From: Saccostrea echinata | Lineage: Eukaryota | Assembly: GCF_033153115.1 (NCBI RefSeq) | Contig: NW_026889752.1 | Span: 4,154,001 to 4,218,000 of the forward strand | Direction of reading: 5' to 3' | Length of the DNA stretch: 64,000 bases | In this document: in pieces, positions 8,143-52,435 of the stretch | Layout of the letters: every line of letters starts with the position of its first letter | Numbering within the stretch: position 1 is the stretch's first letter | Program-made: the position numbers and the translations under genes | Notes under the pieces: model-generated | The model's input: the letters and a program-made list of their open reading frames with translations, nothing else | Told to the model about the DNA's origin: nothing | Database searches by the model: none

Positions 8143-8364
8143 CAGGGATCATTACTCTACGGGGGTCATTTTTCTTCACGTAGGGTATGCAGATTTTAAG
8201 GGTGATGCCACTTTTTCTACGGGCGAAAAAGTCATTTTTCTACGTCGAATAATGACCGGGGGTCATTTTTCTACGTCGAATAATGACCTGGAGTCATTTT
8301 TCGACGTCGAAGAATCACCCCCGGTCATAATTCTACTGGGGTCATTATTCGTCTTTACACCGGC
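8143..8364. mobile_element. Short repeat element built from palindromic units (GGGGTCATTTTTCTACGTCGAATAATGAC), ending ...TTTACACCGGC
   Basis: Several degenerate GTCATT..AATGAC units. The element abuts and truncates peptide gene A and is absent at the paralogous position (18863). Confidence 0.6.
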
Positions 8365-8457
8365 TCTTCTTTCTTCTATCATTGTGACATTATATACACC
8401 CATCATATTGAAGGCAAGAATCAGCATAAGCATAACCATTATCTTGAATAATTTCAT
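8360..8457 (-). pseudogene. Cys-rich peptide gene copy A, truncated (signal and pro region only, fused to repeat sequence)
   Basis: MKLFKIMVMLMLILAFNMMGVYNVTMIEERRAG is 32/33 identical to peptide B. The frame then runs into the repeat (ORF 8263-8457) and the WYCC core is missing. The acceptor TTTATTAG|ATG and the upstream donor AAG|GTATG at 8685 are retained. Confidence 0.85.
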
Positions 8458-10029: not shown

Positions 10030-12720
10030 CTATTCCTCGAGTACAGACAAGGGTGGTTCGCCAAATGGTGCTTCTAATGCTAGTAAAACCACCTTCCAAA
10101 ACATTGATTCCAAGGCGCTACCTTCATTCCAAGTTATAACTGATCTTTTTTTAAGAGTTCTGTGCACAGACGAAATCATGTTTTTGCTATTGATGGTTTT
10201 AAATAACAAAAACACGACAGTAGATTCTCCACGCTGTCTTATTCTTTCTTCCACAAGATTGTTTTGCCAAAGGCACCATTCATTCTTCACAAATTCATTT
10301 GATAACACCACTAATATTTTCTTACTCTCCTTGAAAGCATCTTCTATTTCGCTGCATCTCTCTGCACCAACTACGAATTCTCGATCAGGAATGCACAATC
10401 TTATTTCTCTGGCTTCCAACTGTGGAACAAGCTTTCGCAAAACCCATTTCTCATCTGCTTCACAATATACAACATATGCATCATATTTGAATTCTTGCTC
10501 ATTTAGAAGTCTAACATATCCCCTACTTTTTAAACGGTAATAGTATATAACATTTTTGATAGTTGGCAAATTCACGGAAATCATAATGGAAACAATAATA
10601 AGAAAAATCGCCGATGCTGAAGTTGATATAACGATAACAATCCATGGGTTTTTCTCTTTGCAGTCTTCTGGGGTAAGACTTAGAGTCAGTATCGGCTTCC
10701 GAAGCATCTTGGGAGGCGTCGTACAAGCATACCTGTCCGGAAAATTCAAAAGTGTCACATTTGTTTCTTGGCACCAGTTCTTAAACCAAATCAAATCACA
10801 TCCACAATCAAAGGGGTTGTAGGCAAGAGTAAGGGTCTGGAGATTATTCAGGATGTCTGGCGGTATAGATGTTTTGTTTAAAGTAGAAATCCTATTATTA
10901 TCTAGTCTCAAGCTAACGAGATTTGAGAGGTTTTTGAAAACAGAAACATTCCAACCACTAAGTTTATTCTGGGTCAAGGAAAGTGTTTTCAATGTCGTCA
11001 ATGATTTAAATGTGTCCACGTGAATTGTGTCCATTCTATTTTCTTGAAGGGACAATTCTTCTAATCTTTGCAACGGTTTAAGTAGTAAATGACCAATTGG
11101 TCCGGTAGGAAAATGATTTCCACGAAGATCCAAGATAGTGATATTTTTGCACAATGCAAACAATTTTTCCGGATCATATTTTGAAGTATCTTCAAAATTG
11201 AAATCATTGCTCACAAACTTCAGGGTGTGAAGGCTAGATATATTAAATGCAGAATTAAAAATCTTTTTCAGACTCCGAACATTCCCTATTTGCAGCCATT
11301 GGATAGACTTTAATGGGCTGAAAATATTGTCACTGAGTACATGTAATTCCGTAAAACTTAAATCTAATTTTGTCAGCGATGGAAGGCAACTAAAACTGTT
11401 ATTAAAAATGTATTTAATTTTTGAATGTGACAAATACAGTTCTTTTAACTTTGGATGAATGCTGTCCTTTACTTTGTTGCAAAATAATGGAATTTCGGCA
11501 AAGTAGTTGAAACGAAGGTCCAATATTTGCAATCTTGGTAAGCATTGGAAACGATATCCCTGTAAAGTGATTATACTTGTATTTAGAAGATAAAGTTCTG
11601 TTAGATTAGGTGTTAAACTTTGACGTTTTACTCCACAAAACACGGGAATATCCCTCAAAAGATTATTTCCCAAGTCTAAGACTCTAAGGGATGACAGACA
11701 TATCAATGATTTATTTTGTAATTTTGAGATAGACGTGAATTGCAGATGCAGTTCTTCTAAATTTGGAACACTGCTTTTTCCGAATGAATTGCAGAAGTTA
11801 GGAACATGGGTTATTTTATTTTTGCTTAGATATAATACTTTGAGCTTTTCTAAACACGTGAATAGTTTGTTTGGAATTTCTCCCGCTATACCAGTATTGT
11901 CTAAGAACAAGGATTCCAGTTTATTATCACTACTCCGAGGACCGAGGCAAAGTTCAGGAAAACCACCGAGTCTTGTACCTACTACATTCAAAATTTTAAG
12001 CTTTGGAAGGCAATGAAATATAGATGACGTAATAAATCTCAATTTTGTTGATTGTAGCCTTAGGCGCTCCAAATAAGGGAGTTGTTTTATTTTCCCTTCG
12101 CAAAAAAAATTCATATCTTTAAAACTGGACGACGAAAAATCTAATGCTGTCAGTTTAAGATCCTGAAAAATGTCTGCTGTTAAATTCCGCAGTTGATTAC
12201 CTGCTAGTACTACCGTACTCAAGTTAGTATGGGAAACATATTTGAAGAAATCAGGTACAATGTAATTCCATCTGTTTGAAGTAAGATTAAGAATCTGTAA
12301 AGAGGATGAAATATTAAGGAACGCATCTCTTAAAGTTTTGGAAGGAAGTTTTCTGTTATGAGATATTTCCACTTCTTTTAAATTCCGGAGATTTCGGAAA
12401 AGTCCAGTTTGCATAAATTGCATATCTAAACTGTCAAAGCATAGTTTAGTTAAAGGGAGAACTGTAAAGTTCTGTAGGTTGCGTACAAAAATCTTTTCAC
12501 ATTTGAAATAGCGAACAGTAACATCTTCTATGTTATATGGAAGTTTAGGAAAAAACAAAAGTTTTTGTCCTTCAGGTGCAGACTGGCAAACTGCTTTATG
12601 AGTTTTATCGTCACACAAACACATTCCATTGCCACAGTAAGTTACTGCTCCTAACGACGATTTGAATACGGATAGCAAAAGAAAACAACACATATGAAGG
12701 ATGTCTACATTCACTTCCAT
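10030..12720 (-). CDS. Toll-like receptor (single cysteine cluster type), 896 aa, intact; TLR-1 of cluster
   Basis: Signal peptide, LRRNT (CGNGMCLCD..C), many LxxLxLxxN repeats, LRRCT (NPFDCGCDLIWF..YAC..C), TM helix (WIVIVISTSASAIFLIIVSIMISV) and TIR domain (YDAYVVY, LCIPDREF, SNEFVKNEWC, FW). Uninterrupted ORF. Confidence 0.97.
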   Translation of the reverse strand: MEVNVDILHMCCFLLLSVFKSSLGAVTYCGNGMCLCDDKTHKAVCQSAPEGQKLLFFPKLPYNIEDVTVRYFKCEKIFVRNLQNFTVLPLTKLCFDSLDMQFMQTGLFRNLRNLKEVEISHNRKLPSKTLRDAFLNISSSLQILNLTSNRWNYIVPDFFKYVSHTNLSTVVLAGNQLRNLTADIFQDLKLTALDFSSSSFKDMNFFCEGKIKQLPYLERLRLQSTKLRFITSSIFHCLPKLKILNVVGTRLGGFPELCLGPRSSDNKLESLFLDNTGIAGEIPNKLFTCLEKLKVLYLSKNKITHVPNFCNSFGKSSVPNLEELHLQFTSISKLQNKSLICLSSLRVLDLGNNLLRDIPVFCGVKRQSLTPNLTELYLLNTSIITLQGYRFQCLPRLQILDLRFNYFAEIPLFCNKVKDSIHPKLKELYLSHSKIKYIFNNSFSCLPSLTKLDLSFTELHVLSDNIFSPLKSIQWLQIGNVRSLKKIFNSAFNISSLHTLKFVSNDFNFEDTSKYDPEKLFALCKNITILDLRGNHFPTGPIGHLLLKPLQRLEELSLQENRMDTIHVDTFKSLTTLKTLSLTQNKLSGWNVSVFKNLSNLVSLRLDNNRISTLNKTSIPPDILNNLQTLTLAYNPFDCGCDLIWFKNWCQETNVTLLNFPDRYACTTPPKMLRKPILTLSLTPEDCKEKNPWIVIVISTSASAIFLIIVSIMISVNLPTIKNVIYYYRLKSRGYVRLLNEQEFKYDAYVVYCEADEKWVLRKLVPQLEAREIRLCIPDREFVVGAERCSEIEDAFKESKKILVVLSNEFVKNEWCLWQNNLVEERIRQRGESTVVFLLFKTINSKNMISSVHRTLKKRSVITWNEGSALESMFWKVVLLALEAPFGEPPLSVLEE

Positions 12721-14668: not shown

Positions 14669-17627
14669 TACTTGAAAAAAATGTTTCAATAGCTACAGCC
14701 ATATATTTGCCTTAAGTTTCTTAAATTTCCAGTTTCAGAAGAAATTACATTTTATCCATTATCAAAGTAGTGTTGTTTATAAATATCTGATGATTTATTT
14801 GTTAGTACCCCAGTGCCTTTTGCATGCAATCATACTCCTTTTACATTATCTTGTGATTTTTTAGTAAAATAATTTTTTCATATTTTCTCTATTCTATGTA
14901 CTTTTCTTTCGAAATGTTGCGCTCTATAAATTGTTCAGATTCTCGAAAAACTCAAGTATAATTTACTCCTAACTTGTATGATTAAACAAAAAAGGCTTCA
15001 GTATTTTTCTAGAATATGTTTCGAAATAATTATGGACCGCGAACCGGAAAGCAGGGTAATTAATTACGAATATCTTAGAAAGTATTTCTTTGTTATATTC
15101 GTTGAGTCAAACATTTATTCCATTTATCTTCAATTACAAACTGTATGTAGAAGATGCTTACATCATAATTACCTATCACAATTGCCAAGCATTATGACTA
15201 AAAAAGTCAGTAAGTCGATCCTGCAACGATGTTTGTATTATAATACCAAAACGGAGATAATTTTACATAATTGAATTTATTTCTCAAACTTTTTGAACCC
15301 ATATTTTCAAGCCATTAAAAGAGGCAGTAGTTTATTAATTAAAAAAATGTGATTAAAAGATAAAAACACGTTTCTCTAACAAATTATAAAAAAAAAGTCG
15401 GTGGTGCTGAATTATTTGAAAAGATATTCATGATCGATGTATGTACAGTGTTTTTATCATTACTATTTTATTCAATCTTCGTATAAGTTGGTTTAAAGGG
15501 ACGAAGGCACAGATTTGAGATTAATGTCTATCATTTTTTTAGCAAAATTTTACGACTTATATACTCCAGACCGAATTATTTTGAAAAGTACTTTGAAAAC
15601 TCTTTTCTTTGAATATTTTGAAAACTAGGATGGTTTGATTGTCGTTTATCCCTGCATTTTAATAGTCTTAAATTTACACGTAAGATTAAAAAAAGAACTA
15701 AGAAATCTATTGAATATTTTTTTTTAAATATTGATTTAATTTAAAAATATATATAGATAATTTTAAGAAACATAAAATACGCACCAGTGTGGTCGATGGA
15801 TATTCACAAAGTGCGAATCAATATCATTTAGAACCCACCAGGTAAAGCACGTTCATAAATAATGATAAAGCTCGAGTTTGTATTTAAAAACACAAGGGAA
15901 ACCAGAAATTACAAAAGTATTTGTTATTCCTATTCTCCATTCAAATAGATACCAGTACTCAGTGGTCGGTTTACTATTCAAATACTTTAAGGAACAAAAC
16001 AAACAAAAATTGATGCCTGGTTTGGAATATATTTTGAACCTATTTTGTTTATAAATGAAACAATAAATTTCTAAAATATAAAGAAATTGTAAATAATATA
16101 TGAAGTTCAAAAGTCTATCTTTCTGCAACCATCCTTATTAATCTGTATAATTTTTTGAGACTTAAAATCCCATTATTGAGACATTGAATAAAAAAATTAA
16201 AATCTGTGCGGTTAATCTAATTCATATTACTTATTAAAACATGACTTAAGTTGTTACTTTCAATATTTTTTTTATAAAAATTTGTTTGTATCATCCGTCC
16301 TTAAGCGTTTTAGTGTACAAGCATTTTTTCGAAAAAAAAATACCTTCATCTTCCCTTAAAAAAGGCACTTTGGACCCCTAAAGCTATCCTGGCTAAAATT
16401 GTCAAAGTGTATGTAATTGTTGTAAAGGAAACATAGTACTAGGGCTGGATAACATCCACAATTCCATAATGCAGCCTCCATGGCCATTTTCAGTCAGAAG
16501 TAGGGCCTGGGAGAGACTAGTTGACCGTTTAAAGGAACACAGTCTATACGACCCCTAGCCCTTAGGGCTACCCTACCCAAATTGATCACAGTGTATATTA
16601 TACTGTGACATTACACAGTACAAGAAGCTGGATAACTTCCACAATCCCATAACTTTACATTTATCTTTTATCAGGGGATTAATCAGATGACCATCAAAAG
16701 GAATTAGGTTTACAAGACCCCCAATGCCTAAAGGTAGTCCGTCCAAAATGATCGCAGTGTTTACAATACAGGTATAAGTGGTAGGTAGTACACTGTACAA
16801 GGGGTTGGATTACTATCCTTTTCTTTTTGATGATTATATTGTTATCCCAGGCCAAAGTTGAAGGCCAAATTTTGGAATATGGATGTTATCCAGTCCCTTT
16901 TACTCTGTTCACCGTATGTTTTATATGCACCGCGACCAGTTTAGCAAGGCTAATTAAAGAGTTTGGTGTTCTTGTTTACCTTATTCTAATAAAGCTCACC
17001 AGAACAGTCCCAGACCCCTCTCTTAAAGATGAAGATTGACTTATAAGACACGCAGCACTGTAAAGACGAACTATGAAGAAATCAATGGAATAAAGACGTG
17101 CACAAATAGATACCGTTTAAAACTAAATTTATTTTTGTTAAGCTATTTTTTTAGCATACTAGTTAAATATGAATCAATATAACATAGCATACCGCACTCT
17201 GAGATAAATTTAGTTTAGTCACTTGATTTGACAGTCACAGGGTACTATGCATTTTGAGGTCATATACAAATTTGAATATTGCAAGGGCATACCCTAAATA
17301 AAATTCACTTGATGTATATTTTCTACATATTATGTAATTTCCTCTGCTTTATAGAGAATTAACATTTTACTACTTTAAATTTCAAATAATATACTTCATG
17401 TTGAAATATGCATGTCCTTTACTAATTTTTGTATTTATTAAGTAAATTTTGTGATTTCTCGAATAATTCCCATCTCTCTGATTGGCGGAGATCCAACAAT
17501 GTTAGAAAAATACTACGTTATATTGACCTGCACGTGACCTTCCAGGTCAATATAAGGAATTATTTCCAGGTCAATATAAGGAATTATTTATTCTACATTG
17601 GACCAAAAATAGATAATCATATAATAA

Positions 17628-17778
17628 AACAGTTATTGCTGTTTTTTTTTTTAGGTCAATACGGTGATTTAGAAACTTTGGAAGTACAATATTCTCCTCG
17701 CCTTTCGGACTCGGTGAATTTTGTACTCCTCAGGTGTCTAAATCATTGTATTGACCTAAAAAAACAGCAATAATTGTT
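17628..17778. repeat. About 150-bp imperfect palindrome (hairpin end of a non-autonomous element)
   Basis: AACAGTTATTGCTGTTTT..AGGTCAATAC is mirrored by GTATTGACCT..AAAACAGCAATAATTGTT. Confidence 0.85.
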
Positions 17779-18798
17779 CAATTATTATATATAATATATA
17801 TAAATTAGGTTAAAATGATTTTTTTAATGTGAGAATTTTATTTCTAACATGTACAATTTGATTTTACCAGGTTTCATGGTCACTGATAACCCTACATCAA
17901 TTATACTGTCTTTTTGAAACAAATTGTATTTTTCAATTTTTTTTATTGTGTAGATTTGTCAATTTGCATATATCGATTCGTTGTGTAGTTCTGCAGTTCG
18001 AAATTTTTTTGATACCTTTTATTCAATTTTAAAAAAGACATCCGTATAAATTTCAGTGTTTTAAAAATTAAATGCCTCATTAATTGATACACTTATTCAC
18101 GGTAGTAATTTGAAACTTGAATACGCAGTATCAAAACAACACTGTTACTGTTTCTTAATTTTTTTAATTTCAAAGTGATTTATATTAAATTTGTTTTTTC
18201 GTCTTCCGATCGGATTGGCGTCCACCTGATAAAAAAGATTATATTTAATTATTTTCTATACCATATTCATGTTGCTACTCATATACATGCATTAGCTTTT
18301 ATAGCAATTTAATATTTGATAGAATTGTTGGGTTTTTTTTACTGATTTGTAAACTTCGCCCGGAAGCTAAGGTGTCCGGAATATTGGCATCCGGATTAAC
18401 GAAGCTCCACTGTATATATTTTATATTGTCAATATATACTGTGCAATAGAAAGAAAAATCTGAGTTGTTCATCTTAAATATAATATTTTTTAGCTTGAAG
18501 AATTTCAGTTACGTTGCCCCCCCCCCCCCCTCCCCATTCGCAAACTGATATTGTTTCCCATAAAAGAAAACATTAAATCTTTCAAAAGGATGACAATATT
18601 GTAATTTTTATTCAGTCAAAACTTCTGAAAAAAATCCAATGCAAATATGTATAAGAGATCTAGAAAGTAAAATTCTCTTTTCTTCTGTCAATAAATAATA
18701 TTTTTAAAAAGTTTCCAAACATGAAAATTGCGAATTATATTTAATATTCAAGCTATTAAAGAATATATTTCATATTGTATCAAATTTACCTGTCCCCA

Positions 18799-18960
18799 TC
18801 ACCTGCACCATTCCAAACATTCGACCTTATTTTTCCTACAGCAATACCACTCGTCATTTGGTCCGGCTCTTCTTTCTTCTATCATTGCGACATTATATAC
18901 ACCCATCATATTGAAGGCAAGAATCAGCATAAGCATAACCATTATCTTGAATAATTTCAT
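18799..18960 (-). CDS. Small secreted cysteine-rich peptide precursor B, 53 aa: MKLFKIMVMLMLILAFNMMGVYNVAMIEERRAGPNDEWYCCRKNKVECLEWCR*
   Basis: Hand-translated (below the ORF-track cutoff). Hydrophobic signal, RR dibasic site and CC-x6-C-x3-C core that is 13/16 identical to peptide C. Acceptor AG lies immediately before the ATG, donor CAG|GTAAAT lies 9 nt after the stop, and a non-coding upstream exon ends at donor AAG|GTATG (19189). Confidence 0.88.
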   Translation of the reverse strand: MKLFKIMVMLMLILAFNMMGVYNVAMIEERRAGPNDEWYCCRKNKVECLEWCR

Positions 18961-21900
18961 CTAATAAACAGGAAAAAAAATATACTAGAAACAGTGTAGG
19001 ATAAAAAGTTAAACAGATTATAACTAACTTACGATAATTTAAAACAAATACAGGGAATAACAAACTATTTTGAAATTCCTTATTAAAGTACCAAAGAGAG
19101 AAAAAAGAACGAAAAATGTTAGAATGTAACTATGGATTTTAGCAAACAATCTAAATGATATTCAAGTTTAATTCTTGAAATGTTCATACCTTGGTGTTTT
19201 AATGATTCCGTGAGCTATCAACTTTCAGGGGATTGTGATTTCAACGATAATTTGGTACAGTTTATGTAAAGAAGCAATGCGTTTGATGAAGCACTTGCGT
19301 AACACATGTATGAAAATAATTAAAATTTAAACTCCTTTTGGCAACTACTAATATATGATTTGATAAAACTTTTCCCCTGCAAGCAAACAAAACAGGATTT
19401 TAAACAAACAATAATATAATTATTTGTCAAAAAAGGACAGCATAAAGGTAACATCTGTTCCAAAATTGTGAAATACTAATGGAAGTGTTTGAGTGGCACA
19501 CACTATGTGTAATTGTTTCCAAGGGTATGTCATGGGGTAAGTCACGGGGTAAGTCAGTCCCTCAGAAAAAATTCTATCAACCCCATATTCCAGATTTGAT
19601 CATTGTAGACGGAAATAGATAACAGATCTAGTTACTGAATCATTGAGCCATATTCGCTTACTTGTTAAGGATTTAGCTTTTTCTCTATAATTGCAATACT
19701 TCATGTATTTGTTGCATCATTTTTTTTGGAAGTAGGATGTCTATGGAAAATAATCCTCATAATAACTTATTCATTCACGATCTTGATCTATTTACTCTTT
19801 CAATTCACAGAAAAGGAATGTTATGACTGAAATGTAAAGAATATAATCAGGAACCATGTCTTAGATTCCAATAAAACTATACGAATTATTAGCAGAGCAA
19901 ACACGGATCCGAAAAAAACATTCAAGATGGGATCACGTGTCATAGGGGATGAAGCATATCAAACGGTCACACCCATGAACCTCTGTAGCGGTCAATCAAA
20001 CTAATTAAGTTTTGCTGAAGATCAATATTCAGTTCAATCTTTCTGATTTGATCCAAGCCAAACATCATCCCGTAAAGGTACTACACTTAAGACTTTGAAA
20101 ACTGAAGTTTTTTTAACTGTGCAGTGCAGTTATTATATCTTTGGACATCTCTTATACCCTAAGTTTCAATTATGATATACCAACTTACCCTACACTTCGG
20201 ATATTTATTAAAATCTTAACATTAAGAAATTTAAAGTATCTGCAATAGCATAGTCATCATACCGATGTATCACTTAATAAAATCAAATTTCACCTTGTGA
20301 AGTAATGTTTATTTAATAAAAAAAAATTTTTTTTTTTGCTATTAATGAGATTGGGAAGTGTACATAAAAGTACCTGTTTATTAGTACACGTAAAATCCAA
20401 AAGTGCTGAAAAGAATACAACAAACATTTTTTGTTTTGTTCTTACATGAAGAGATTACATGTATAAGCTAGTTTTGAATTTACAAAATATCAAATTCAAA
20501 CACAAAGTTCGTCTATTCGTCGAGTACAGACAAGGGTGGTTCGCCAAATGGTGCTTCTAATGCTAGTAAAACAACCTTCCAAAACATTGATTCCAAGGCG
20601 CTACCTTCATTCCAAGTTATAACTGATCTTTTTTTTAAGAGTTCTGTGCACAGACGAAATCATGTTTTTGCTATTGATGGTTTTAAATAACAAAAACACG
20701 ACAGTAGATTCTCCACGCTGTCTTATTCTTTCTTCCACAAGATTGTTTTGCCAAAGGCACCATTCATTCTTCACAAATTCATTTGATAACACCACTAATA
20801 TTTTTTTACTCTCCTTGAAAGCATCTTCTATTTCGCTGCATCTCTCTGCACCAACTACGAATTCTCGATCAGGAATGCACAATCTTATTCCTCTGGCTTC
20901 CAACTGTGGAACAAGCTTTCGCAAAACCCATTTCTCATCTGCTTCACAATATACAACATATGCATCATATTTGAATTCTTGCTCATTTAGAAGTCTAACA
21001 TATCCCCTACTTTTTAAACGGTAATAGTAAATAACATTTTTGATGGTTGGCAAGTTCATGGAAATCATAACGGAAACAATAATAAGAAAAATCGCCGATG
21101 CTGAAGTTGATATAACGATAACAATCCATGGGTTTTTCTCTTTGCAGTCTTCTGGGGTAAGACTTAGAGTCAGTATCGGCTTCCGAAGCATCTTGGGAGG
21201 CGTCGTACAAGCATACCTGTCCGGAAAATTCAAAAGTGTCACATTTGTTTCTTGGCACCAGTTCTTAAACCAAATCAAATCACATCCACAATCAAAGGGG
21301 TTGTAGGCAAGAGTAAGGGTCTGGAGATTATTCAGGATGTCTGGCGGTATAGATGTTTTGTTTAAAGTAGAAATCCTATTATTATCTAGTCTCAAGCTAA
21401 CGAGATTTGAGAGGTTTTTGAAAACAGAAACTTTCCAACCACTAAGTTTATTCTGGGTCAAGGAAAGTGTTTTCAATGTCGTCAATGATTTAAATGTGTC
21501 CACGTGAATTGTGTCCATTCTATTTTCTTGAAGGGACAATTCTTCTAATCTTTGCAACGGTTTAAGTAGTATATGACCAATTGGTCCGGTAGGAAAATGA
21601 TTTCCACGAAAATCCAAGATAGTGATATTTTTGCACAATGCAAACAATTTTTCCGGATCATATTTTGAAGTATCTTCAAAATTGAAATCATTGCTCACAA
21701 ACTTCAGGGTGTGAAGGCTAGATATATTAAATGCAGAATTAAACATCTTTTTCAGACTCCGAACATTCCCTATTTGCAGCCATTGGATAGACTTTAATGG
21801 GCTGAAAATATTGTCACTGAGTACATGTAATTCCGTAAAACTTAAATCTAATTTTGTCAGCGATGGAAGGCAACTAAAACTGTTATTAAAAATGTATCTA

Positions 21901-24692
21901 ATTTTTGAATGTGACAAATACAGTTCTTGTAACTTTGGATGAATGCTGTCCTTTACTTTGTTGCAAAATAATGGAATTTCGGCAAAGTAGTTGAAACGAA
22001 GGTCCAATATTTGCAATCTTGGTAAGCATTGGAAACGATATCCCTGTAAAGTGATTATACTTGTATTTAGAAGATAAAGTTTTGTTAGATTAGGTGTTAA
22101 ACTTTGACGTATTACTCCACAAAACACGGGAATATCCCTCAAAAGCGTATTTCCCAAGTCTAAGACTCTAAGGGATGACAGACATATCAATGATTTATTT
22201 TGTAATTTTGAGATAGACGTGAATTGCAGATGCAGTTCTTCTAAATTTGGAACACTGCTTTTTCCGAATGAATTGCAGAAGTTAGGAACATGGGTTATTT
22301 TATTTTTGCTTAGATATAATACTTCTCCCGCTATACCAGTATTGTCTAAGAACAAGGATTCCAGTTTATTATCACTACTCCGAGTACCGAGGCAAAGTTC
22401 AGGAAAACCACCGAGTCTTGTACCTACTACATTCAAAATTTTAAGCTTTGGAAGGCAATGAAATATAGATGACGTAATAAATCTCAATTTTGTTGATTGT
22501 AGCCTTAGGCGCTCCAAATAAGGGAGTTGTTTTATTTTCCCTTCGCAAAAAAATTCATATCTTTAAAACTGGACGACGAAAAATCTAATGCTGTCAGTTT
22601 AAGATCCTGAAAAATGTCTGCTGTTAAATTCCGCAGTTGATTACCTGCTAGTACTACCGTACTCAAGTTAGTATGGGAAACATATTTGAAGAAATCAGGT
22701 ACAATGTAATTCCATCTGTTTGAAGTAAGATTAAGAATCTGTAAAGAGGATGAAATATTAAGGAACGCATCTCTTAAAGTTTTGGAAGGAAGTTTTCTGT
22801 TATGAGATATTTCCACTTCTTTTAAATTCCGGAGATTTCGGAAAAGTCCAGTTTGCATAAATTGCATATCTAAACTGTCAAAGCATAGTTTAGTTAAAGG
22901 GAGATCTGTAAAGTTCTGTAGGTTGCGTACAAAAATCTTTTCACATTTGAAATAGCGAATAGTAACATCTTCTATGTTATCTGGAAGTTTAGGAAAAAAC
23001 AAAAGTTTTTGTCCTTCATGTACAGACTTGCAATCTGCTTGATGAGTTTTATCGTCACACAAACACATTCCATTGCCACAGTAAGTTACTGCTGCTAACG
23101 ACGACTCCAACACGGATAGCAGAAGAAAACAACACATTTGAAGAATGTCTACATTCACTTCCATTTTTTCTTCAAATCTGTGAAATATGAAGTAGTGTTA
23201 TATACACCTTTTAATGTACAAGTTAAAATCAATAATTTGTGATGATAGAAATCGTCATTAATTTTATTAAATTCATAAAGTTAACTTCCTCCTTGATTGA
23301 AAATGTTTTCTACTTTAAAAAATAAATTTGACAATAGCGAAAACAAAATGAAATCATTCACATTACTACATCTGAATGATACTCTTATCTGTTTCACAAA
23401 ACGTTCTGTTATTTTTAGAATAATTTTGCTCTACAATGTACGTGTTCTTCAAGTTTTTACTTCCGCATATTGTCATAGCGAATTGAGAAACATGAATTGA
23501 ATAATAATGATTCATCTCTTTACTTAAAAAATCACATAGAATAATTTTGAGCTAATATCAACCAAATCATGCTGAAAGCGTAATTCAAAAGATCCATTTA
23601 AAAAGATTTTAATTGAGCATTCCACTTTTAAACCCCTTTTATATATATCAAAATTTTTCAAATATCAGATACATGTACTTATAAACCCACTGGAAGAAGG
23701 CATTTTTATGCAATCTAAAATTTCTTATAGATAAAGTTATTGGACCATTTGATAGATATAAAGCTTAATTTTAATGACTATGAGATATGATTTCAAAAAT
23801 ATATATACTCACATTAAGGATCGAAATTCAAAGATCCTTTATGAATTGATCAAAAATATTTAACATCTTTCGCATATGCTTCCTGTTACTTCCGCATTCT
23901 AGAATTTCGTTGGAAGTTTAGGAATACATAAGGGATATATTTAATCTGTCAAGTACAAATTCGTTTCTATGATTCATGCAAGACGGTTTATATATAACTA
24001 CATTACCTGCATTTTAATAGTCTTAAATTTACACGTTAGATTAAAAAAAAACAACAAAGAAATCTGTTGAATATATTTTTTTAAATATTGATTTAATTTA
24101 AATATATATATAGATAATTTTAAGAAATATAATATACGCACCAGTGTGGTCGATGGGTATTCACAAAGTGTGAATCAATATCATTTAGAACCACCAGGTA
24201 AAGCACGTTCATAAATAATGATAAAGCTCGAGTTTGTATTTAAAAACACAAGGGAAACCAGAAATTACAAAAGTATTTGCTATTCCTATTCTCCATTCAA
24301 ATACATAACAAAACTCAGTGGTCGGTTTACTATTCAAATACTTTAAGGAAAGATGATACAAACAAACAAAAAATTGATGCCTGGTTAGGTAATATATATT
24401 TTGGACCTATTTTGTTTATAAATGAAACAAAAAATTTCTAAAATATAAAGAAATTGTAAATAATATATGACGTTCAAAAGTCTATCTTTCTGCATATGTT
24501 TTCTATATATATTTTTTGAGACTTAAGATCCCATTATTGAGACTTTGAATAAAAAATTAAAATATGTGCGGTTAATCTAATTCATATTACTTATTAAAAC
24601 ATGACTGAAGTTGTTACTTTCAATATTTTTTTAATAAAAAATTGTTTGTATCATCCGTCCTTAAGTGTCTTAGTGTACAAGCATTTTTTCGG

Positions 24693-40248: not shown

Positions 40249-42927
40249 TTATTTTTCTAGTACAGACACGGGTGGTTCACCGAGTGGTGCTTCTACTGCT
40301 AATGAAACCACCTTCCAAAACATTGATTCTTTGGTACCACCTTCGTGCCAAGTTACAACGGATCTTTTTTTAAGAGTTCTGTGAACAGACGAAATCATGT
40401 TCTTGCTATTGATGCTTTTGTATAACAAAAACACGACAGTAGAATCTCCACGTTGTCTTATTCTTTCTTCCACAAGATTGTTTTGCCAAAGGCACCACTC
40501 ATTCTTCACAAATTCATTTGATAACACCACTACTATTTTCCTACTATCTTTGAAAGCATTTTCTATTTCACTGCATCTCTCGACACCAACTTCAAATTCT
40601 CGATCAGGAATACACAATCTTATCCCTTTTGCTTCCAGTCGTCGGACAAGCTTTCGCAAAACCCACTTCTCATCTGCTTCACAATATACAACATATGCAT
40701 CATATTTAAATTCTTGTTCATTTAAAAGTTTCACATATCCCCTTTTTCTCAATCGGCAATAATAAATAACATTTTTGATAGTTGGCAAATGCACAGAAAT
40801 CAGAATAGAAACAATTAAAAGAAAAAATGCTGATGTGGAAGTTGCTATAAGGATAATAATCCATGGGTTTTTCTCTTTACAATCATCCTCGGTAAGATTG
40901 AGATTCAGGATAGTCTTCTGATACAAATTCTTAGGTGTCTGACAAGTATACCTGTATGGAAAACTGAGAAGCGTCACATTTGTCTTTTGACACCAATTCT
41001 TAAACCAGATCATATCACATCCGCAATCAAAAGGGTTGATAGCAAGCGTTAGAGTGTGGAGATTGTCCATTAGTTCTAATGGTATAGATGTTTTGTTTAA
41101 AATAGCAATCTTATTCTGATCTAGACGTAATTCAACTAGATTTGAAAGGTTTTTAAATACGGTAGGTTTCCAACTACTAAGTTTATTTCTCGTCAAAGAA
41201 AGAATCTTTAATTTCTTTAACGATTTAAATGTGTCCACGTGGATTGAGTTCATTCTATTTTCTTGTAGGGACAATTTCTCTAATCTTTGCAAAGGTTTGA
41301 GCAACAAATGACCAAGAGATCCAGTAGGAAAATGATTCCCACTAAGATCTAAACTAGTGACATTTGTGCACAAGGCAAACATATTTTCGGAAGCATTTGT
41401 AAATTTGAAGTCATTGCTAACGAACTTCAGGGTGAGAAGACTAGATATATTAAATGCATAAGTAGAAATCTTTTTCAGACACTTAACATTTCTAATTTTT
41501 AACCATGTGAGAGACCTTAGTGAACTAAAAATATTATCATTGAGTTCTTCTAATTTCGTATGACTCAAATCTAGTTTTCTCAACGAGGGAAGGCAAGTAA
41601 AATCGTTTTTGAAAATGTTTTTAATGTCTGTATTTGACAGAATTAGTTCTTGTAAATTTGGATTGGTGCTCTTATTTACTTCGTTGCAAAATAATGGAAT
41701 TTCTTCAAAGCTGTTTTCCCTGAGGTCTAATTTTTTCAACATTGGCAAGCACTGGAAACGATAACCTTTTAAAATTATTATTTTAGTACGATTCAGAGAA
41801 AGTGATGTTAGATTGGGAGTTAAACTATGCTGTTTTACTCCACAAAATGTGGGAATATCTCTCAAAGGATTATCACTCAAGTCTATAATTCGAAGAGAGA
41901 ACAGACACATCAGAGATTCCTTTTGTAATGTTGATATAGATGTGGACTTAAGATACAACTCTTCTAGTTCAGGAACACTGCTTTTTCCAGATGAATTGCA
42001 GAAATGTGGAACATGAGTAATTTTATTATTTCTGCTCAGATTCAACACCTTAAGCTTGGGTAAACACTTCAAACGTTCAACTGAAATTTCGTTGTCTATA
42101 CTGGTATTTTCTAGCAACAATATTTCCAATTTATTACCACTATTCTCGGGACTTAAACAAAATCCAGGAAAGTCACCCAGTTCTGTATCTCCTACGTCCA
42201 ACTTTTGAAGCTCTGGGAAGCAATGAAATATAGATGGCATGATTACTCTCAATTTTGTTGATTGTAGCGTTAGACACTTCAAAGAAGGGAAAAAGTTCAT
42301 TTGCCCTTTGCAAAAAGCTTTCATGTCTTTGAAACTAGACCGCGATAAATCTAATGCAGTCAAATTAAGATCCTTAAGAACATTTGCTGATAATTTCACC
42401 AGTTGGTTACCTGCTAGTACTACCGTACTTAAGTTAGTACGTGACACATATCTGAATAAATCTGGTACAATGATTTTCCAACTGTTTGAAGTTAGATTCA
42501 GAATCTGTAAAGATTTCGAAATGTTTATGAGTGAATCTCTCAAGATTCCAGATGTGAGTTTCGTATTAAAAGATATTTCCACTTCTTCCAATTTTTTGAG
42601 ATTTTGAAAGATTCCACTTTGCATGAAATGAATATCTAAATTTTCAAGGATTATTTTTCTTAAAGGTAAAGTCGTAAAATTTTGCAGATCATTTGCAGAA
42701 ATGTTCTGACGAATGAAATAGTGGACTTTAACTTCTCTTATATAATTGGGAAGTCTTGGAAAATACGTCAGCGTTTGATTCTTCTGTTTGACATGGCCAC
42801 AAACCGCTGTGAGTTTTATGTCGTCACACAAACACATCTCGTGAGCACAGAATGTTACAGCTGAGGATGCAGTTTCGAACAGGGAATGCAAAAGAAAATA
42901 ACACAGAAAAAAGTCAAGTGGTCTCAT
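40249..42927 (-). CDS. Toll-like receptor (single cysteine cluster type), 892 aa, intact; diverged paralog TLR-3 of cluster
   Basis: Same signal-LRRNT-LRR-LRRCT-TM-TIR layout, collinear with TLR-1. The TIR is highly similar and the ectodomain is clearly diverged. Confidence 0.97.
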   Translation of the reverse strand: MRPLDFFLCYFLLHSLFETASSAVTFCAHEMCLCDDIKLTAVCGHVKQKNQTLTYFPRLPNYIREVKVHYFIRQNISANDLQNFTTLPLRKIILENLDIHFMQSGIFQNLKKLEEVEISFNTKLTSGILRDSLINISKSLQILNLTSNSWKIIVPDLFRYVSRTNLSTVVLAGNQLVKLSANVLKDLNLTALDLSRSSFKDMKAFCKGQMNFFPSLKCLTLQSTKLRVIMPSIFHCFPELQKLDVGDTELGDFPGFCLSPENSGNKLEILLLENTSIDNEISVERLKCLPKLKVLNLSRNNKITHVPHFCNSSGKSSVPELEELYLKSTSISTLQKESLMCLFSLRIIDLSDNPLRDIPTFCGVKQHSLTPNLTSLSLNRTKIIILKGYRFQCLPMLKKLDLRENSFEEIPLFCNEVNKSTNPNLQELILSNTDIKNIFKNDFTCLPSLRKLDLSHTKLEELNDNIFSSLRSLTWLKIRNVKCLKKISTYAFNISSLLTLKFVSNDFKFTNASENMFALCTNVTSLDLSGNHFPTGSLGHLLLKPLQRLEKLSLQENRMNSIHVDTFKSLKKLKILSLTRNKLSSWKPTVFKNLSNLVELRLDQNKIAILNKTSIPLELMDNLHTLTLAINPFDCGCDMIWFKNWCQKTNVTLLSFPYRYTCQTPKNLYQKTILNLNLTEDDCKEKNPWIIILIATSTSAFFLLIVSILISVHLPTIKNVIYYCRLRKRGYVKLLNEQEFKYDAYVVYCEADEKWVLRKLVRRLEAKGIRLCIPDREFEVGVERCSEIENAFKDSRKIVVVLSNEFVKNEWCLWQNNLVEERIRQRGDSTVVFLLYKSINSKNMISSVHRTLKKRSVVTWHEGGTKESMFWKVVSLAVEAPLGEPPVSVLEK

Positions 42928-45419: not shown

Positions 45420-48400
45420 CTACACCTCCAAAAGGGTGACAAGTTCTGATATAGGTCTCACATAAGTAGAGCGTGTACCATCCTTCACAACACATATCTC
45501 AACTTTTCGGATGCGGCCATCATCACTTGGAAATGTCTTTTGTACAATGCCCATAGGCCAGTCATTTCGCGCACTTCCGCTGTCTTTCATCAAGATGACA
45601 TCACCAGTCTTCAAGTTTGAACGTGCTTCTTTCCACTTATGACGCACTTGAAGGGTATGTATATATTCTGTTCTCCACCTCTTCCAAAATTCATCTGCTA
45701 ATAACTGCACTTGCTTCCAATGCGCACGTATATCCTTTGGTCCAAACTCTGGGAAGGGGTGAATATTGCATGTGGTCTTCATTGTTAGCAAGGTAGAGGG
45801 TGTGAGCAAACATGGAGACTCTGGATCTGTTGACACGGGTAATAAAGGTCTATTGTTTACAATAGCTGTAACTTCTGCCATGAAAGTTACCAAGACATCG
45901 TGGGTTAGTTCGACTCGATTCTGTAGTAACATAGAGTCAAGTATTCTGCGGGACACTCCTATCAAACGTTCCCATGCTCCCCCCATGTGAGAGGCATGGG
46001 GTGGGTTAAATACCCAAGAAGTTCTTGAATTAGAGAGAAACGTCCCAACTGGTCCTTTTTCCACAAACTCAGCATTGATGGACAGGTCCTGTGTTGCCCC
46101 AATGAAATTGGTTCCCCGGTCTGACCTAAACTGTATCACTGGACCTCTAATGGCAACGAATCGCCTCAATGCATTAATAAATGCTGCGCTTGATAACTCT
46201 TCGATGACTTCGATATGTACCGCTCGGGTCACCATACAAGTAAATAACAAGGCCCAACGTTTTTGATTGGCTGAACTTCCCCTGGTCCTCCTGTGAACAA
46301 TTGCCCAGGGTCCAAATGTATCCACACCAACGTATGAGAATGGAGGACTAGGTGTCACTCTGTCTTCTGGTAAGCATGCCATCTGTTGCCATCCAAGTTT
46401 TCCTCTAAGCTTGCGGCATATAACACACTTGTTGATTTCAGATGAAATCATGCGCTTGGATCCCACTATCCAAAATCCAGCAGCTCGCACCGCTCCATCA
46501 GTGAAGTGTCGACCCTGATGTGAAACTTTGCAATGAAAATGGTGAATAAGAAGCTTGGCCAGGTGGTGGTTTTTAGGGATGATTATCGGATGTTTGGATA
46601 AGTCGTCAACAATGCTTTTGCCCTTTAACCTCCCGCCAACACGTAAGAGACCATCTGGACCTAGCACTGGAGACAAGGATAAGATTGAGCTTCTGTTCAG
46701 TGATCTTCCTTCTCTAATGACTTGAATCTCTGGGCCAAAGGCTTCCTTCTGAACTGTCTGAATAATGAAGTGTTCTGTTTCTGAGATGATATCTGTGTCG
46801 TAAAGTTTCCCACCTGTATTGGAAGTCTTGACACCCTTGTACTTCCTGATGAAGGTCTTTAAATAAGCTATTGCTCGCACAAGTTTTCTCCAGTCTGAAA
46901 ACCTTGTAAAATTGGAAACTCCAAGCATGGACTTCCTGTCTTGCAACTCCTCTGTTTTGAAGCACCTTACTTCTGGTTGCAACTCTTTATCTATCTCTGG
47001 GTTGATGAGAGGGTAATGGTCTAGAGCAGATGTGGAATGAGATTCTGCTGAAAGGTCTGGTCCTTTGATCCACATGCTGTCTGCTAATTGAGATGCTTTC
47101 ACACTTCTTGTAGCAACATCTGCTGGGTTGAGTTCAGATGCTATGTAATTCCACTGCGAGGGCTGACTTGACATTCTGATGCGACTCACTCGATTCCCTA
47201 CATAAATGTAGAACCTTCTATTCTCATTTGTTATGTACCCAAGTACCACTTGACTGTCGGAATAGAAAGAAAAATGTTCTCTGTCTATCTTCAACTGTTC
47301 ATGGATGACATCTGCCAACTGAACTGCCAAAACCGCAGCACATAATTCGAGTCTAGGCACTGTATGCCCACTAAATGGCGCAACCTTTGCTTTTCCCAAG
47401 AGAAAACTTGTTGTGCAGGAATCTGGACACATGCCATGCAACTTCAAGAATGCCACGGCTGCGATGGCTTCTTTAGATGCATCTGCAAAGATATGCACCT
47501 CTCTCTTCTGGGCGCCCTCAAATGACTGGGAACTGTACTGTCTGGGAATCTGGAACTCTTCTAACTCTGGCAACGATCGTACCCAGGATTTCCATTCCTT
47601 GTAGAGAGAGTCAGGTAAGGGATCATCCCAGTCCAATTTTGATGAAGAGGAGACCATGTTTCTCAGCAGTATTTTGCCCCTGATTATAACTGGTTGAGCA
47701 AAACCTATCGGATCGTAGATACTATTGATGATGGATAATGCTCCACGCTTGGTAAAAGGTTTCTGCTCATCTGACACCTTAAACAAGAAGACGTCTGAGT
47801 CTGTATCCCATAAAAGTCCTAAACTTCTCTGTAGTGGTAGTGACGCTGCACCGAGGTCAAGGTCTTTCAGGTTCTTGGCGAGGTCACTTGATGGAAATGA
47901 ATCGAGAAGTGTTCTGCTATTCGATGCGAATTTGTGAAGTCTTAACTTCCCTCCTTCATTAAGCGCCCCCTTTGTCCTATGTACAAGGCTTATGGCTTCT
48001 TCCTCACTGAAACATGACAATAGACCATCGTCAACATAAAAATTATTGTTTATGAGATCTTTGACGTCTTCACTGGATGATTCTACTGATTTTCTCAGAC
48101 CATAAGTGGCGACGGAGGGTGAGGGGCTATTCCCAAAGACGTGCACTGTCATACGGAAGGTGGTAAGTGGGCGGTTGAAATCATTATCCTCGTGCCACAA
48201 AAATCTCAAAAAGTCTCTGTGTTCAGGGCTCACTTTGAAGTTATAGAACATTTGTTCCACATCCATTGTTACTGCTACTGCTTCCTTTCTGAAGCGCATC
48301 AAGATTCCTAGCAAGCTATTGCTAAGGTCGGGTCCTTTGAGCAGCACATCATTTAGAGATACATCACAGAATTTGGCAGATGAATCAAAAACCATTCTTA

Positions 48401-51362
48401 TGCTGTCTGGCTTTTTGGTATGGTATACTCCAAAGAGCGGAAGATACCAGCATTCGTTTCCTTCATCCAAATCTGGGGCCTTTTCTGCATGGTTATTATC
48501 AAATAACTTCTGCATAAAGTCAATCACATGCTCGCGTTTTTGTCCATTGTGCTTCAAACTTGCATCAAAGGATCTGGCACGCCGTTCAGCTGCTTCCTTG
48601 TTGTTTGGCAAGGTTCTCCTGGTAGATCGAAAAGGGAGTGGAGCCATCCAATGACCTTGATCTGTCTTCTGTATTCCAGAACCTATAATATTGAGAAAGT
48701 CTTTATCCTCAACTGATAATCCTGGCTTCTCATCCTGATCCGTTCTTCTAAAAATTGAGTCAAAGTCAATCTTAATCTCACTATCACACGGAATCATCAT
48801 GGTGGGACGTCCATTACTTAGAATGGTGGTTTTGTTGACGTTGACAATGTCTGGGCTATGTACCGTTCCGAGGCAGACATTTCCGATGATAACCCATCCA
48901 AGTGGCAGTTGTTGTCCATAAGGTAAGTTATCCTTCCCGATTCTGTGGTCTAACACATGATGTGCCATAATGAGGTCACGACCGATCAGTAACTCAATGT
49001 CTATACATTTGTCTAAAGGTGGTATGAGATGTGCAATGTCGTTCAGGTGGGGAAAAGATTGTGCCACTCCAGGTGATGGGATTTCTTCTCTATTGTTCGG
49101 GATATCATTGCACTCTATCAAATCAGGCAGCTGCAAAGTACATGTTCCATCAATAGATTCCACCATGTATCCCGAGGCTCTGCGTCCAGCTGTATTGAAT
49201 TTACCAGCACAAGATGATAGGACATATTCTATTTCACTTCCACATTCTCCAAAGGCATTGAAGAACTGTGAGACTGCAAGGGATCGATTACTTTGTTCGT
49301 CTATCATACAATAGAGTTCTCTAGACAAGTTCTTTCTTCCTTGGGGGTACACTCTCACTAAAATTATCTTGGCACATGATTTTGATGTATTTCCTCGAGT
49401 GTTACATATTTTTGTACACTTGTTCGTTACACTCACTTCTTGAATGAATTTCTCCCCCTCGTGATCTTTCACAGAAGACCTTCGTAAGTCTGGATGAAGT
49501 GCTGATGGGTGCTTGGAAGAGTTACAAACATCACACTTTACAGTCATTTTACAGTTTGATTGGAAATGTTTCTTTGGTCCGCAGCACTTGAAACAGAAGC
49601 CATTTTCTCTGATGAAATCTTTCCTTTCTTGTAGTGGCCTTATGCGAAATTGCCTACACGCATTGAGTGTATGGTTGGTTCCATGCACTGGACAGCTTTC
49701 TGTGGTCACATCTGTTTTCCTTGAGGACACTTGCGTCTTGATATAACTTGTTCTTCTGACATGTTTACATCCATCACTCTGCTGCGCACTTTCAGTAGTT
49801 TCATATATGAAACTAGGGTCATTGCGTATCTTTGCGATATTATTAACAAATGCGGAAAAGACAGAAAATGGCGGATAGATCACACTATTTTTCTGTTTAT
49901 ACTTGTTAGCTTCATTTGTCCACTTCTCCTGAATGCTTGGAGGTAATTTTCTGACAATCGGGTTTATGCCACCTGAGGAGTCATAATATGAGAAGAGTTT
50001 TGCATACTTTTCATTCTGCATGATTGACTCAATCTCCATCAGAATGTCTGCGAGTTCAAAAAGCTCACTTCTGTTTGAGTTCTTTAAGGTAGGAAAAGCT
50101 GCGACTCTGTTCTTCAGTGATGATTCAATGCTCTCTGGACTCCCAAATTTTGAATCCAATCTTTCCCATATCAGACGCAATGCTCTGGAGGGGTCATGGG
50201 GATTTGCTGAACGGATGTTGAGAGCCTGCTGCTTAGACTTCATTCCAAGGTTCTGGATCAAGAGGTCAAGTTTTTCCATAACAGAAGCACCCAGTTCATT
50301 TGTCACATTTTCAAATGTTGATTTCCAGACGAGGTAATGTCCTGGGACATCATCAAATGCAGTTAGTCTTGTTGGTATAAGTTGCTTTTTGGCCAACAAC
50401 TTAGCAAGTTCATTTGTTTCACTTATAACATTTTTCTCCGGTTGAACGACAACAAACTCTGGAGCAGTTGGGTTCAGAGGTTTCTGCGGTTTTTCTTCTG
50501 GTGTCTGTGAAATACATTGAACTTGATCTGAGCACTCACTGTTGTAGTTGTTTACAGGTTCTCTTGGTCTTTCTGAAGATTCACTAAGATTAGTGTGTTC
50601 ACTTGTGTTAGTGTTAGGAAGTTCTCTTGGTTTTTCTGTATATTCACAATGATCCTGATATTTGGACGGTTCAACTGTGTAAGTATTGTCTGTTTGATAT
50701 GGATCATCTTCACCTAGGTCATTTTCACAGGGTGGTATGTAGCTTTCTCCAAGAGAGTCGTATTCAAGACATTTCTTTATTGCCGTCAAACTTGACTGGG
50801 CTGCCTCAAACTCTTTCTTGACCGTGAGTAGACGCTGGGCTGCCTTAATCTCTGCTTCTTTTCTCATCAAATCCGCTTCTTCTTTAGCGTATTTCAGTTT
50901 CATTCGTGCTTCCTCAACCTTCGCTGTATGTTGTAGCACTACAGATGTGAGACGTGAGGATGAGGACCCTTGACTGTATGCTGACTTCTGCGATCTTGTG
51001 TTAGGTAGTATGGAGTTTAACTGTTTCAACACTGATGTCACTTTTTCTTGTAATGCAGTTGCGATGAGGGACCTGGAGGCTTCCTCTCTCGTACTGGCTT
51101 CGTGGCGTTGACTTCGTAAATATGCTACATATTCCGCAGAGGCCTTTTCATATTGCAACATGTATTTATTCAATGAAGTTTTGCAAGTCTTTGCACGCTC
51201 GAGATTCATGACTGGGTTTTCTTCCATATCCATGAGGATGGAATCAATGTCTCTCTTGATGTTTCCTAACTTGAATACGTGCCTGTTAACTTTTTCCTCG
51301 AACTGTTCCATGGCAGCTAAGGTAATGTTGCGGGATTTCCTTAATGCCAGAGCATCTACCAT
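45420..51362 (-). CDS. BEL/Pao Gag-Pol polyprotein (1980 aa from the first ATG outside the LTR)
   Basis: Triple Gag Zn knuckles (CPVH..H..C, CFKC..H..C, CDVC..H..H), protease-like IDEQSNRS, RT YVDD, RNase H IFADAS and integrase H..H..CVIC with VDTFGP, SDRGTNF and GGAWER. Domain order is PR-RT-RH-IN. Confidence 0.96.
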   Translation of the reverse strand: MVDALALRKSRNITLAAMEQFEEKVNRHVFKLGNIKRDIDSILMDMEENPVMNLERAKTCKTSLNKYMLQYEKASAEYVAYLRSQRHEASTREEASRSLIATALQEKVTSVLKQLNSILPNTRSQKSAYSQGSSSSRLTSVVLQHTAKVEEARMKLKYAKEEADLMRKEAEIKAAQRLLTVKKEFEAAQSSLTAIKKCLEYDSLGESYIPPCENDLGEDDPYQTDNTYTVEPSKYQDHCEYTEKPRELPNTNTSEHTNLSESSERPREPVNNYNSECSDQVQCISQTPEEKPQKPLNPTAPEFVVVQPEKNVISETNELAKLLAKKQLIPTRLTAFDDVPGHYLVWKSTFENVTNELGASVMEKLDLLIQNLGMKSKQQALNIRSANPHDPSRALRLIWERLDSKFGSPESIESSLKNRVAAFPTLKNSNRSELFELADILMEIESIMQNEKYAKLFSYYDSSGGINPIVRKLPPSIQEKWTNEANKYKQKNSVIYPPFSVFSAFVNNIAKIRNDPSFIYETTESAQQSDGCKHVRRTSYIKTQVSSRKTDVTTESCPVHGTNHTLNACRQFRIRPLQERKDFIRENGFCFKCCGPKKHFQSNCKMTVKCDVCNSSKHPSALHPDLRRSSVKDHEGEKFIQEVSVTNKCTKICNTRGNTSKSCAKIILVRVYPQGRKNLSRELYCMIDEQSNRSLAVSQFFNAFGECGSEIEYVLSSCAGKFNTAGRRASGYMVESIDGTCTLQLPDLIECNDIPNNREEIPSPGVAQSFPHLNDIAHLIPPLDKCIDIELLIGRDLIMAHHVLDHRIGKDNLPYGQQLPLGWVIIGNVCLGTVHSPDIVNVNKTTILSNGRPTMMIPCDSEIKIDFDSIFRRTDQDEKPGLSVEDKDFLNIIGSGIQKTDQGHWMAPLPFRSTRRTLPNNKEAAERRARSFDASLKHNGQKREHVIDFMQKLFDNNHAEKAPDLDEGNECWYLPLFGVYHTKKPDSIRMVFDSSAKFCDVSLNDVLLKGPDLSNSLLGILMRFRKEAVAVTMDVEQMFYNFKVSPEHRDFLRFLWHEDNDFNRPLTTFRMTVHVFGNSPSPSVATYGLRKSVESSSEDVKDLINNNFYVDDGLLSCFSEEEAISLVHRTKGALNEGGKLRLHKFASNSRTLLDSFPSSDLAKNLKDLDLGAASLPLQRSLGLLWDTDSDVFLFKVSDEQKPFTKRGALSIINSIYDPIGFAQPVIIRGKILLRNMVSSSSKLDWDDPLPDSLYKEWKSWVRSLPELEEFQIPRQYSSQSFEGAQKREVHIFADASKEAIAAVAFLKLHGMCPDSCTTSFLLGKAKVAPFSGHTVPRLELCAAVLAVQLADVIHEQLKIDREHFSFYSDSQVVLGYITNENRRFYIYVGNRVSRIRMSSQPSQWNYIASELNPADVATRSVKASQLADSMWIKGPDLSAESHSTSALDHYPLINPEIDKELQPEVRCFKTEELQDRKSMLGVSNFTRFSDWRKLVRAIAYLKTFIRKYKGVKTSNTGGKLYDTDIISETEHFIIQTVQKEAFGPEIQVIREGRSLNRSSILSLSPVLGPDGLLRVGGRLKGKSIVDDLSKHPIIIPKNHHLAKLLIHHFHCKVSHQGRHFTDGAVRAAGFWIVGSKRMISSEINKCVICRKLRGKLGWQQMACLPEDRVTPSPPFSYVGVDTFGPWAIVHRRTRGSSANQKRWALLFTCMVTRAVHIEVIEELSSAAFINALRRFVAIRGPVIQFRSDRGTNFIGATQDLSINAEFVEKGPVGTFLSNSRTSWVFNPPHASHMGGAWERLIGVSRRILDSMLLQNRVELTHDVLVTFMAEVTAIVNNRPLLPVSTDPESPCLLTPSTLLTMKTTCNIHPFPEFGPKDIRAHWKQVQLLADEFWKRWRTEYIHTLQVRHKWKEARSNLKTGDVILMKDSGSARNDWPMGIVQKTFPSDDGRIRKVEICVVKDGTRSTYVRPISELVTLLEV

Positions 51363-51398
51363 GATGGTGAGTCTGTGTCCAAGCAATGGTTTTTTTAC

Positions 51399-52282: not shown

Positions 52283-52435
52283 TTAGCGGCACCACTCCAA
52301 ACACTCCTCCGTGTTCCTGCGACAGCAGTACCAGTCGCCATGATCTTGTAATTGCAGCTCTTCTCCGATTGGTGTTCCCAATATGCTGACAACAGCCAAT
52401 AGAACGAGGAGAATAAGGATCTTTTGCAACTCCAT
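52283..52435 (-). CDS. Small secreted cysteine-rich peptide precursor C, 50 aa: MELQKILILLVLLAVVSILGTPIGEELQLQDHGDWYCCRRNTEECLEWCR*
   Basis: Strong signal peptide, acidic spacer and CC-x6-C-x3-C core homologous to peptide B. Acceptor TTTTCTTTTCCAG|ATG, donor GAG|GTAAAA 6 nt after the stop (52276), and a last exon from 52058 with AATAAA at 51980-51985. Confidence 0.88.
   Translation of the reverse strand: MELQKILILLVLLAVVSILGTPIGEELQLQDHGDWYCCRRNTEECLEWCR

Follow-up and report, generated by a model that had tools for sequence, protein, structure and literature searches.

Gene B of Saccostrea echinata and its paralogues: a putative lineage-restricted family of small secreted two-disulfide peptides

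Bivalves depend on innate effectors, and oysters are considered to have few gene-encoded antimicrobial peptides in comparison with mussels. Among the antimicrobial peptides of other animals, the hairpins of the tachyplesin, gomesin and arenicin type carry two disulfides, with a C-x3-C motif on each strand, and a neutral or acidic charge is atypical of antimicrobial peptides in general. For the conotoxins, superfamily membership is set by the signal sequence.

By analogy of design, the nearest described bivalve counterpart of the peptides discussed here would be MgCRP-I of Mytilus. This multigene family, restricted to bivalves, encodes short secreted peptides rich in cysteine, its first exon is non-coding, and it is characterized by six invariant cysteines, a pre-pro region that is conserved and a four-exon gene in which the coding sequence is split; it has been reported to be absent from oysters (PMC4558851).

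The subject of the present study is a gene, called B, in a 64,000-nucleotide stretch of the Saccostrea echinata genome (the whole stretch is called the window below). Our main reading, to which we assign a probability of about 80%, is that gene B is active and belongs to a small, lineage-restricted family of secretory precursors of 50–62 aa, each consisting of a signal, a variable linker and a C-terminal four-cysteine module.

Gene B and its transcript

The reading frame of gene B occupies positions 18799–18960 on the minus strand of the window. It starts with ATG and has 53 codons followed by a TGA stop, in agreement with the 53-aa frame given in the preliminary description of this DNA. The transcript evidence consists of assembled contigs from four public runs of two studies, presumed to be RNA, which were aligned to positions 15000–20900, and it concerns gene B alone among the family loci.

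The contigs define three exons, all on the minus strand. Exon 1 is non-coding, and its 3' end is covered at 19190–19211 by contigs of runs X2 and X3, in which 20–22 nt are joined to 18960; its 5' limit lies probably near 19300. Intron 1 (18961–19189, 229 nt, with the ends GTATGA...TATTAG) is of the GT..AG type, and the joint 18960>19190 is found in both X2 and X3. Exon 2 (18790–18960, 171 nt) contains the entire coding sequence and is covered by contigs of X1, X2, X3 and X5 with 0–1 differences. It is followed by intron 2 (18226–18789, 564 nt, GT..AG, with the ends GTAAAT...TATCAG), for which the joint from 18790 to 18225 is present in X1, X3 and X5. Exon 3 (18149–18225, 77 nt) is 3' untranslated sequence up to the poly(A) site. 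Record 21 of X3 spans exons 2 and 3, and a single X3 contig covers all three exons in order. A run of T that forms a loose end at 18149 in an X1 contig is the poly(A) tail of the minus-strand transcript, and the sequence has an ATTAAA poly(A) signal at 18163–18168 (minus strand), 14–19 nt ahead of the cleavage site. Both of the junctions that had been proposed as a check on the gene, 19189>18961 and the one at the 18789 donor, are thus present in the run contigs as GT..AG joints.

The word depths of the exon 2 contigs are 55–575, against about 4–10 for the adjoining unspliced pieces, depth being here a poor measure of expression and an indication of presence only. In the six-frame genome search no retrocopy of gene B was found in the assembly, which makes a processed DNA copy an unlikely origin of the joined form. 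Gene B is real: it is transcribed, spliced and polyadenylated, and it gives a three-exon mRNA with the whole coding sequence in the middle exon.

One may still ask whether the frame is a chance ORF in a non-coding transcript or in one derived from the Toll-like receptor (TLR) genes of the window. A broken TLR gene stands 1.6 kb upstream of gene B on this strand, and exon 1 of gene B is mapped at its 3' end only. However, the sole ATG within the 141 nt preceding the exon 1 donor is at 19307, so that the last 117 nt of exon 1 contain no ATG before the start of the ORF, and the mRNA terminates 77 nt into exon 3. When the codon-level conservation of the cores is also considered, together with the recurrence of the same exon design at loci that have no TLR ORF within 10 kb on either side (see below), this explanation retains almost no probability.

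Family loci, core conservation and neighbourhood

With B, C, D, E, F1 and G as queries, six-frame searches across the entire 923-Mb assembly gave nine loci on three contigs (C3, C32 and C48), namely seven complete frames with an in-exon stop, one (E) that is open to the donor, and one split copy. The family thus counts at least nine related loci in this one assembly, and the earlier claim of a peptide family, made from B and C, is both confirmed and enlarged. On C3, D (L005), a split B-like copy, B and C lie within 107 kb; C32 carries E (L012), F3 (L017) and F2 (L016), and C48 carries G (L015) and F1 (L014).

Paralogue C, found by a six-frame scan for CC-x6-C-x3-C, has 50 codons and a TAA stop and lies at 52283–52435 on the minus strand. 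As previously described, an AG acceptor stands immediately 5' of the ATG in both genes, and a GT donor follows the stop by 9 nt in B and by 6 nt in C. The same arrangement is seen in all intact frames, with a CAG acceptor immediately before the start and a GT donor shortly past the stop. A degenerate pattern made of the last six codons and the stop has 4 matches in the 923-Mb genome, all on one strand and within 107 kb, compared with 0 for the reversed control. The resemblance between genes B and C is far beyond chance.

In the alignment of the precursors (50–62 aa), the invariant positions are M1, one leucine in the leader, CCR, the third cysteine and WC, which corresponds to the core pattern CCR...C-x2-WC. 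The cysteine spacing is CC-x6-C-x3-C in B, C, D, E and G, and CC-x8-C-x3-C in F. D is a bridge member, with a leader like those of E, F and G (about 45–52% identity over the precursor) and a core like those of B and C. F and G have an additional C-terminal tail of eight residues. Member E (L012:1417–1500, C32) has no stop between the cysteine motif and the donor and its frame is open, which means either that a longer C-terminal tail is finished in the next exon or that this copy is decaying.

The split copy consists of a 5' half (codons 1–33) at 8360–8457 on the minus strand, 96.5% identical to B from 18863 upward and broken at a CCGG site in codons 32–33, and of a 3' half at C3:4130520–4130584 (L003), 31.7 kb away. 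The stretch 8319–8359 is the terminal inverted repeat of the inserted element. Namely, 8319–8360 is the inverted complement of C3:4130584–4130625, with 95% identity over 42 nt; the inverted repeat proper begins at 8359, and the aligned ends take in the shared CCGG site. Judged from these alignments, the apparently dead B-like copy is one gene split by an insertion rather than the result of a deletion, and the 31.7-kb insert with its 42-nt inverted repeats looks like a DNA-transposon-type insertion.

Some variants were also observed in the contigs. The exon 2 contigs of X1, X2 and X5 have 18888 C>T, which changes Ala25 to Thr, and the broken copy at 8360–8457 also has Thr; the change could be an allele or the trace of a past conversion. 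One X2 contig matches gene B (18801–18864) only downstream of 18864, which is the breakpoint of the split-copy insertion. It carries 18831 T>C, that is, Asn to Asp in the core, its upstream 130 nt are unlike the window, and its depth is similar to that of the normal B contig. The contig points to a further expressed copy or allele, missing from the assembly, whose N-terminal half is different.

The conserved core of gene B comprises 16 residues with the CC-x6-C-x3-C motif at 18802–18849 (minus strand). The comparison of the B and C cores in the preliminary description stands, with 13 of the 16 residues identical, six of these using different codons, and the stops being TGA and TAA, respectively. 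Between the B, C and D cores, 13–17 of the 48 bases differ vs 3–5 of the 16 residues. With equally many changes at randomly chosen positions, at most 1 of 100,000 trials gave as few replacements and no stop (P at most 1e-5), and this supports the purifying selection on the core that had been proposed. The synonymous sites of the cores are saturated according to a Nei–Gojobori count, and this argues against recent gene conversion. In the F trio, which is near-identical and young, all 4 amino-acid changes fall in codons 1–27, and the 3 changes in codons 28–62 are all synonymous.

No DNA similarity could be detected between the flanks of B and C, and in the core as well the divergence is too great for blastn. 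The core is retained between paralogues that have no remaining DNA similarity. The signal and pro regions had been called unalignable, which is correct for the DNA and for the linker, but not strictly for the leaders, since those of B and C align without gaps with about 7 of 20 residues identical. Likewise, a conserved mature part behind a variable signal is found for B, C and D and for the F trio, but it is not a family-wide property, as the D leader is common to the C32 and C48 members while their inter-cysteine loops differ. Across the whole family the pattern is mixed.

The window contains three single-exon TLR genes (LRR and TIR domains), all on the minus strand, at 10030–12720, 20607–23164 and 40249–42927. 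The second one, 1.6 kb upstream of gene B, is broken into two adjacent frames of 636 and 210 aa. Its duplicate upstream of the broken peptide copy (96.5% identical) is intact, unlike the TLR by gene B. For D, E, F and G, the listing of ORFs of at least 120 aa up to 10 kb away on each side contains none of TLR size, and seven ORFs near these loci that were scanned in Pfam have no LRR or TIR domains. TLR linkage as a rule of the family was therefore rejected, and the TLR neighbourhood is confined to the B unit and its duplicate. Between the third TLR gene and gene C there is a 2018-aa frame (45420–51476) with a Pao retrotransposon peptidase and DUF5641, a BEL/Pao-type element that accounts for the GC-rich stretch there.

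Predicted product and possible role

The predicted signal peptide of gene B comprises codons 1–20 (18901–18960, minus strand), with a mean hydropathy of 2.75 over 12 residues and a putative cleavage site at its end. Since the leaders of all members are hydrophobic and, in the alignment, a small residue occupies position −1 in each of them, cleavage is predicted after residue 20–22, which would leave peptides of 30–41 residues. The mature part of each member has exactly four cysteines.

With AlphaFold2, the full precursor is modelled with a helix over residues 2–27, while the core has a pLDDT of about 54 and is uninformative there. This single long helix, as well as the Met at position −3 of the presumed cleavage site in B, which is not ideal, would fit a membrane-anchored microprotein, whose leader would remain uncleaved as a signal anchor and keep the cysteine module tethered. 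We consider this improbable, because the small residue at −1 is present in all members and the short polar N-terminus is typical of cleaved signals. Secretion after cleavage is thus the preferred reading.

The linker or pro-region of gene B comprises codons 21–31 (18868–18900, minus strand) and ends with RR. The RR site from which a 22-aa mature peptide had been predicted does exist in B, but it is absent from C and D; the only other basic pair ahead of the core is the KR of G. A glycine before the stop, which would be an amidation signal, is not found in the family alignment. The net charge past the leader is 0 in B, −4 in C, +1 in D, +5 in both E and F1, and 0 in G.

For the mature part, AlphaFold2 gives two strands (mature residues 18–23 and 28–32) with a four-residue turn between them. 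The block-mean pLDDT is 85 and 79 over residues 21–33, compared with a mean of 66 overall, at an alignment depth of eight sequences. With moderate confidence, the core is therefore predicted to be a β-hairpin and not a helix, and the cystine-stabilised helix suggested in the preliminary description finds no counterpart in the model.

The searches for relatives gave the following results. No relative was found in a word-index protein search, either with gene B alone or with the 8-member alignment, or in a profile search of 1.84 billion protein representatives. Four matches of the latter were rejected as spurious, being long repetitive or low-complexity proteins without the motif. None of the 8 members has a match in Pfam up to E = 10. 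The PDB sequence search gave insignificant matches only; its best rows, to the zinc region of RNA polymerase subunit RPB10 with E of about 0.1, are read as chance. A Foldseek comparison of the mature model with the PDB gave no match, the model being too small for this to be informative. The degenerate core pattern has 0 matches in metagenome contigs, and an exact look-up of seven of the proteins in a collection of 15 billion found none of them, the large TLR proteins of the window being likewise missing from it. A literature search by topic found no description of such peptides.

The earlier statement that the peptides match no described family is thus in line with the word-index, profile, Pfam and PDB-sequence results. 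Protein libraries cover very short eukaryotic ORFs poorly, and absence from them is therefore weak evidence; the lack of homologues may be due in part to this poor coverage. Single-exon ORFs of about 50 codons between UTR introns may also escape routine annotation. The peptides are read as a new, lineage-restricted family of secreted two-disulfide peptides.

As to the function, the following sequence of events can be proposed. Signal peptidase would remove the leader, and the remaining peptide of 30–41 residues would form two disulfides that lock a short β-hairpin, on which the conserved Trp/Tyr and Arg side chains would be displayed. The peptide would then act extracellularly through binding to a specific target and not by charge-driven membrane lysis, since the B/C/D branch is neutral to acidic. 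Among the possible roles, that of a host-defence or mucosal effector is the leading one, with a probability that we would put slightly short of even. It is suggested by the multi-copy clusters, the transposon-broken copies and the absence of cross-phylum conservation.

The main competitor is an endogenous signalling peptide, that is, a hormone, neuropeptide or pheromone acting on a specific receptor. Strong purifying selection on a short, non-cationic and disulfide-constrained core would be expected to suit such a role, and a peptide-type GPCR ORF is found 7 kb from paralogue D. On the other hand, the family is multi-copy and clustered, with one transposon-broken copy, and the protein library searches found no relatives outside this genome. 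It also departs from a classical neuropeptide precursor, as there are no conserved mono- or dibasic flanking sites, no glycine for amidation and no mollusc-wide relatives found, and a survey of oyster neuropeptides describes nothing comparable (PMC8398477). The GPCR adjacency, moreover, occurs at one locus only and may be coincidental. We regard a signalling role as unlikely, although less so than the other competing explanations considered here; the remaining probability belongs to other secreted roles. Overall, an effector that binds a target outside the cell, most probably for host defence, is preferred to an endogenous hormone.

The GPCR in question is a single-exon, rhodopsin-family ORF at L035:6663–8093 (plus strand; C3:4105962–4107392), upstream of D and on the opposite strand; the nearest relative with a solved structure is the cholecystokinin A receptor (E = 3e-17).

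A more specific proposal is that this undescribed oyster-lineage hairpin family has two branches, one cationic and antimicrobial-like, and the other the neutral, sequence-locked B/C/D branch in the TLR cluster, which would itself act as a specific extracellular ligand, for example a peptide of innate immunity that is cytokine-like or modulates a receptor. At present this is a speculative extension with a low probability. An expressed multi-copy two-disulfide peptide family, apparently missing from the protein collections that were searched, would in any case add to the oyster secretome. Its unusual feature is the strict conservation of a non-cationic core, and the peptides are small enough for direct synthesis, folding and assay.

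Comparison with known peptide systems

The bivalve defensins, big defensins, mytilins and myticins have six to eight cysteines and a CS-αβ or related fold. The present peptides have four cysteines per member and no Pfam match, and the earlier view that they follow none of these frameworks is thus upheld.

The α-conotoxins (framework I, CC-C-C) are closer in design, being likewise made as molluscan secretory precursors with a signal, a linker and a C-terminal two-disulfide module that opens with a vicinal CC. The oyster peptides have the CC-C-C framework of the conotoxin A superfamily, and in a language-model atlas the nearest clusters of B and F1 are conotoxin precursors, with scores of 0.75–0.77, which are below the reliability line of the tool. 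A distant membership in that superfamily is nevertheless very improbable. The signal of the A superfamily (Pfam PF07365, Toxin_8), the part that defines membership, is not recognized in the oyster leaders, nor does any other conotoxin model match, even at E = 10. In addition, the oyster loops are 6/3, or 8/3 in F, sizes which to our knowledge are outside the usual conotoxin classes, the coding sequence is uninterrupted in one exon, the animal is not venomous, and the mature part of the C3 branch is conserved and not hypervariable. The conotoxin likeness is therefore taken as one of precursor design and not of kinship.

With apamin and endothelin, which have a cystine-stabilised helix, the family shares a C-x3-C pair close to the C-terminus. 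The partner motif is however CC and not C-x-C, and the moderate-confidence model has strands.

The hairpin antimicrobial peptides of the tachyplesin, gomesin and arenicin type resemble the oyster peptides in having a two-disulfide module of 16–25 residues, with a hairpin predicted in the present case, and E and F are cationic and aromatic. The differences are the vicinal CC instead of a C-x3-C on each strand, the neutral or acidic charge of B, C and D, and the lack of any sequence relation. Cationic hairpin peptides combine a net positive charge with an amphipathic, disulfide-braced hairpin; the net charge is +5 in E and F1, and 0, −4 and +1 in B, C and D, respectively.

Finally, MgCRP-I has in common with the present family that it is a multigene bivalve family with a non-coding exon 1, encoding short secreted peptides rich in cysteine. 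The oyster family differs from it in that there are four cysteines, the coding sequence occupies one exon and the mature core is under purifying selection. It is a new sequence family within a known general kind, that of small secreted disulfide-rich peptides.
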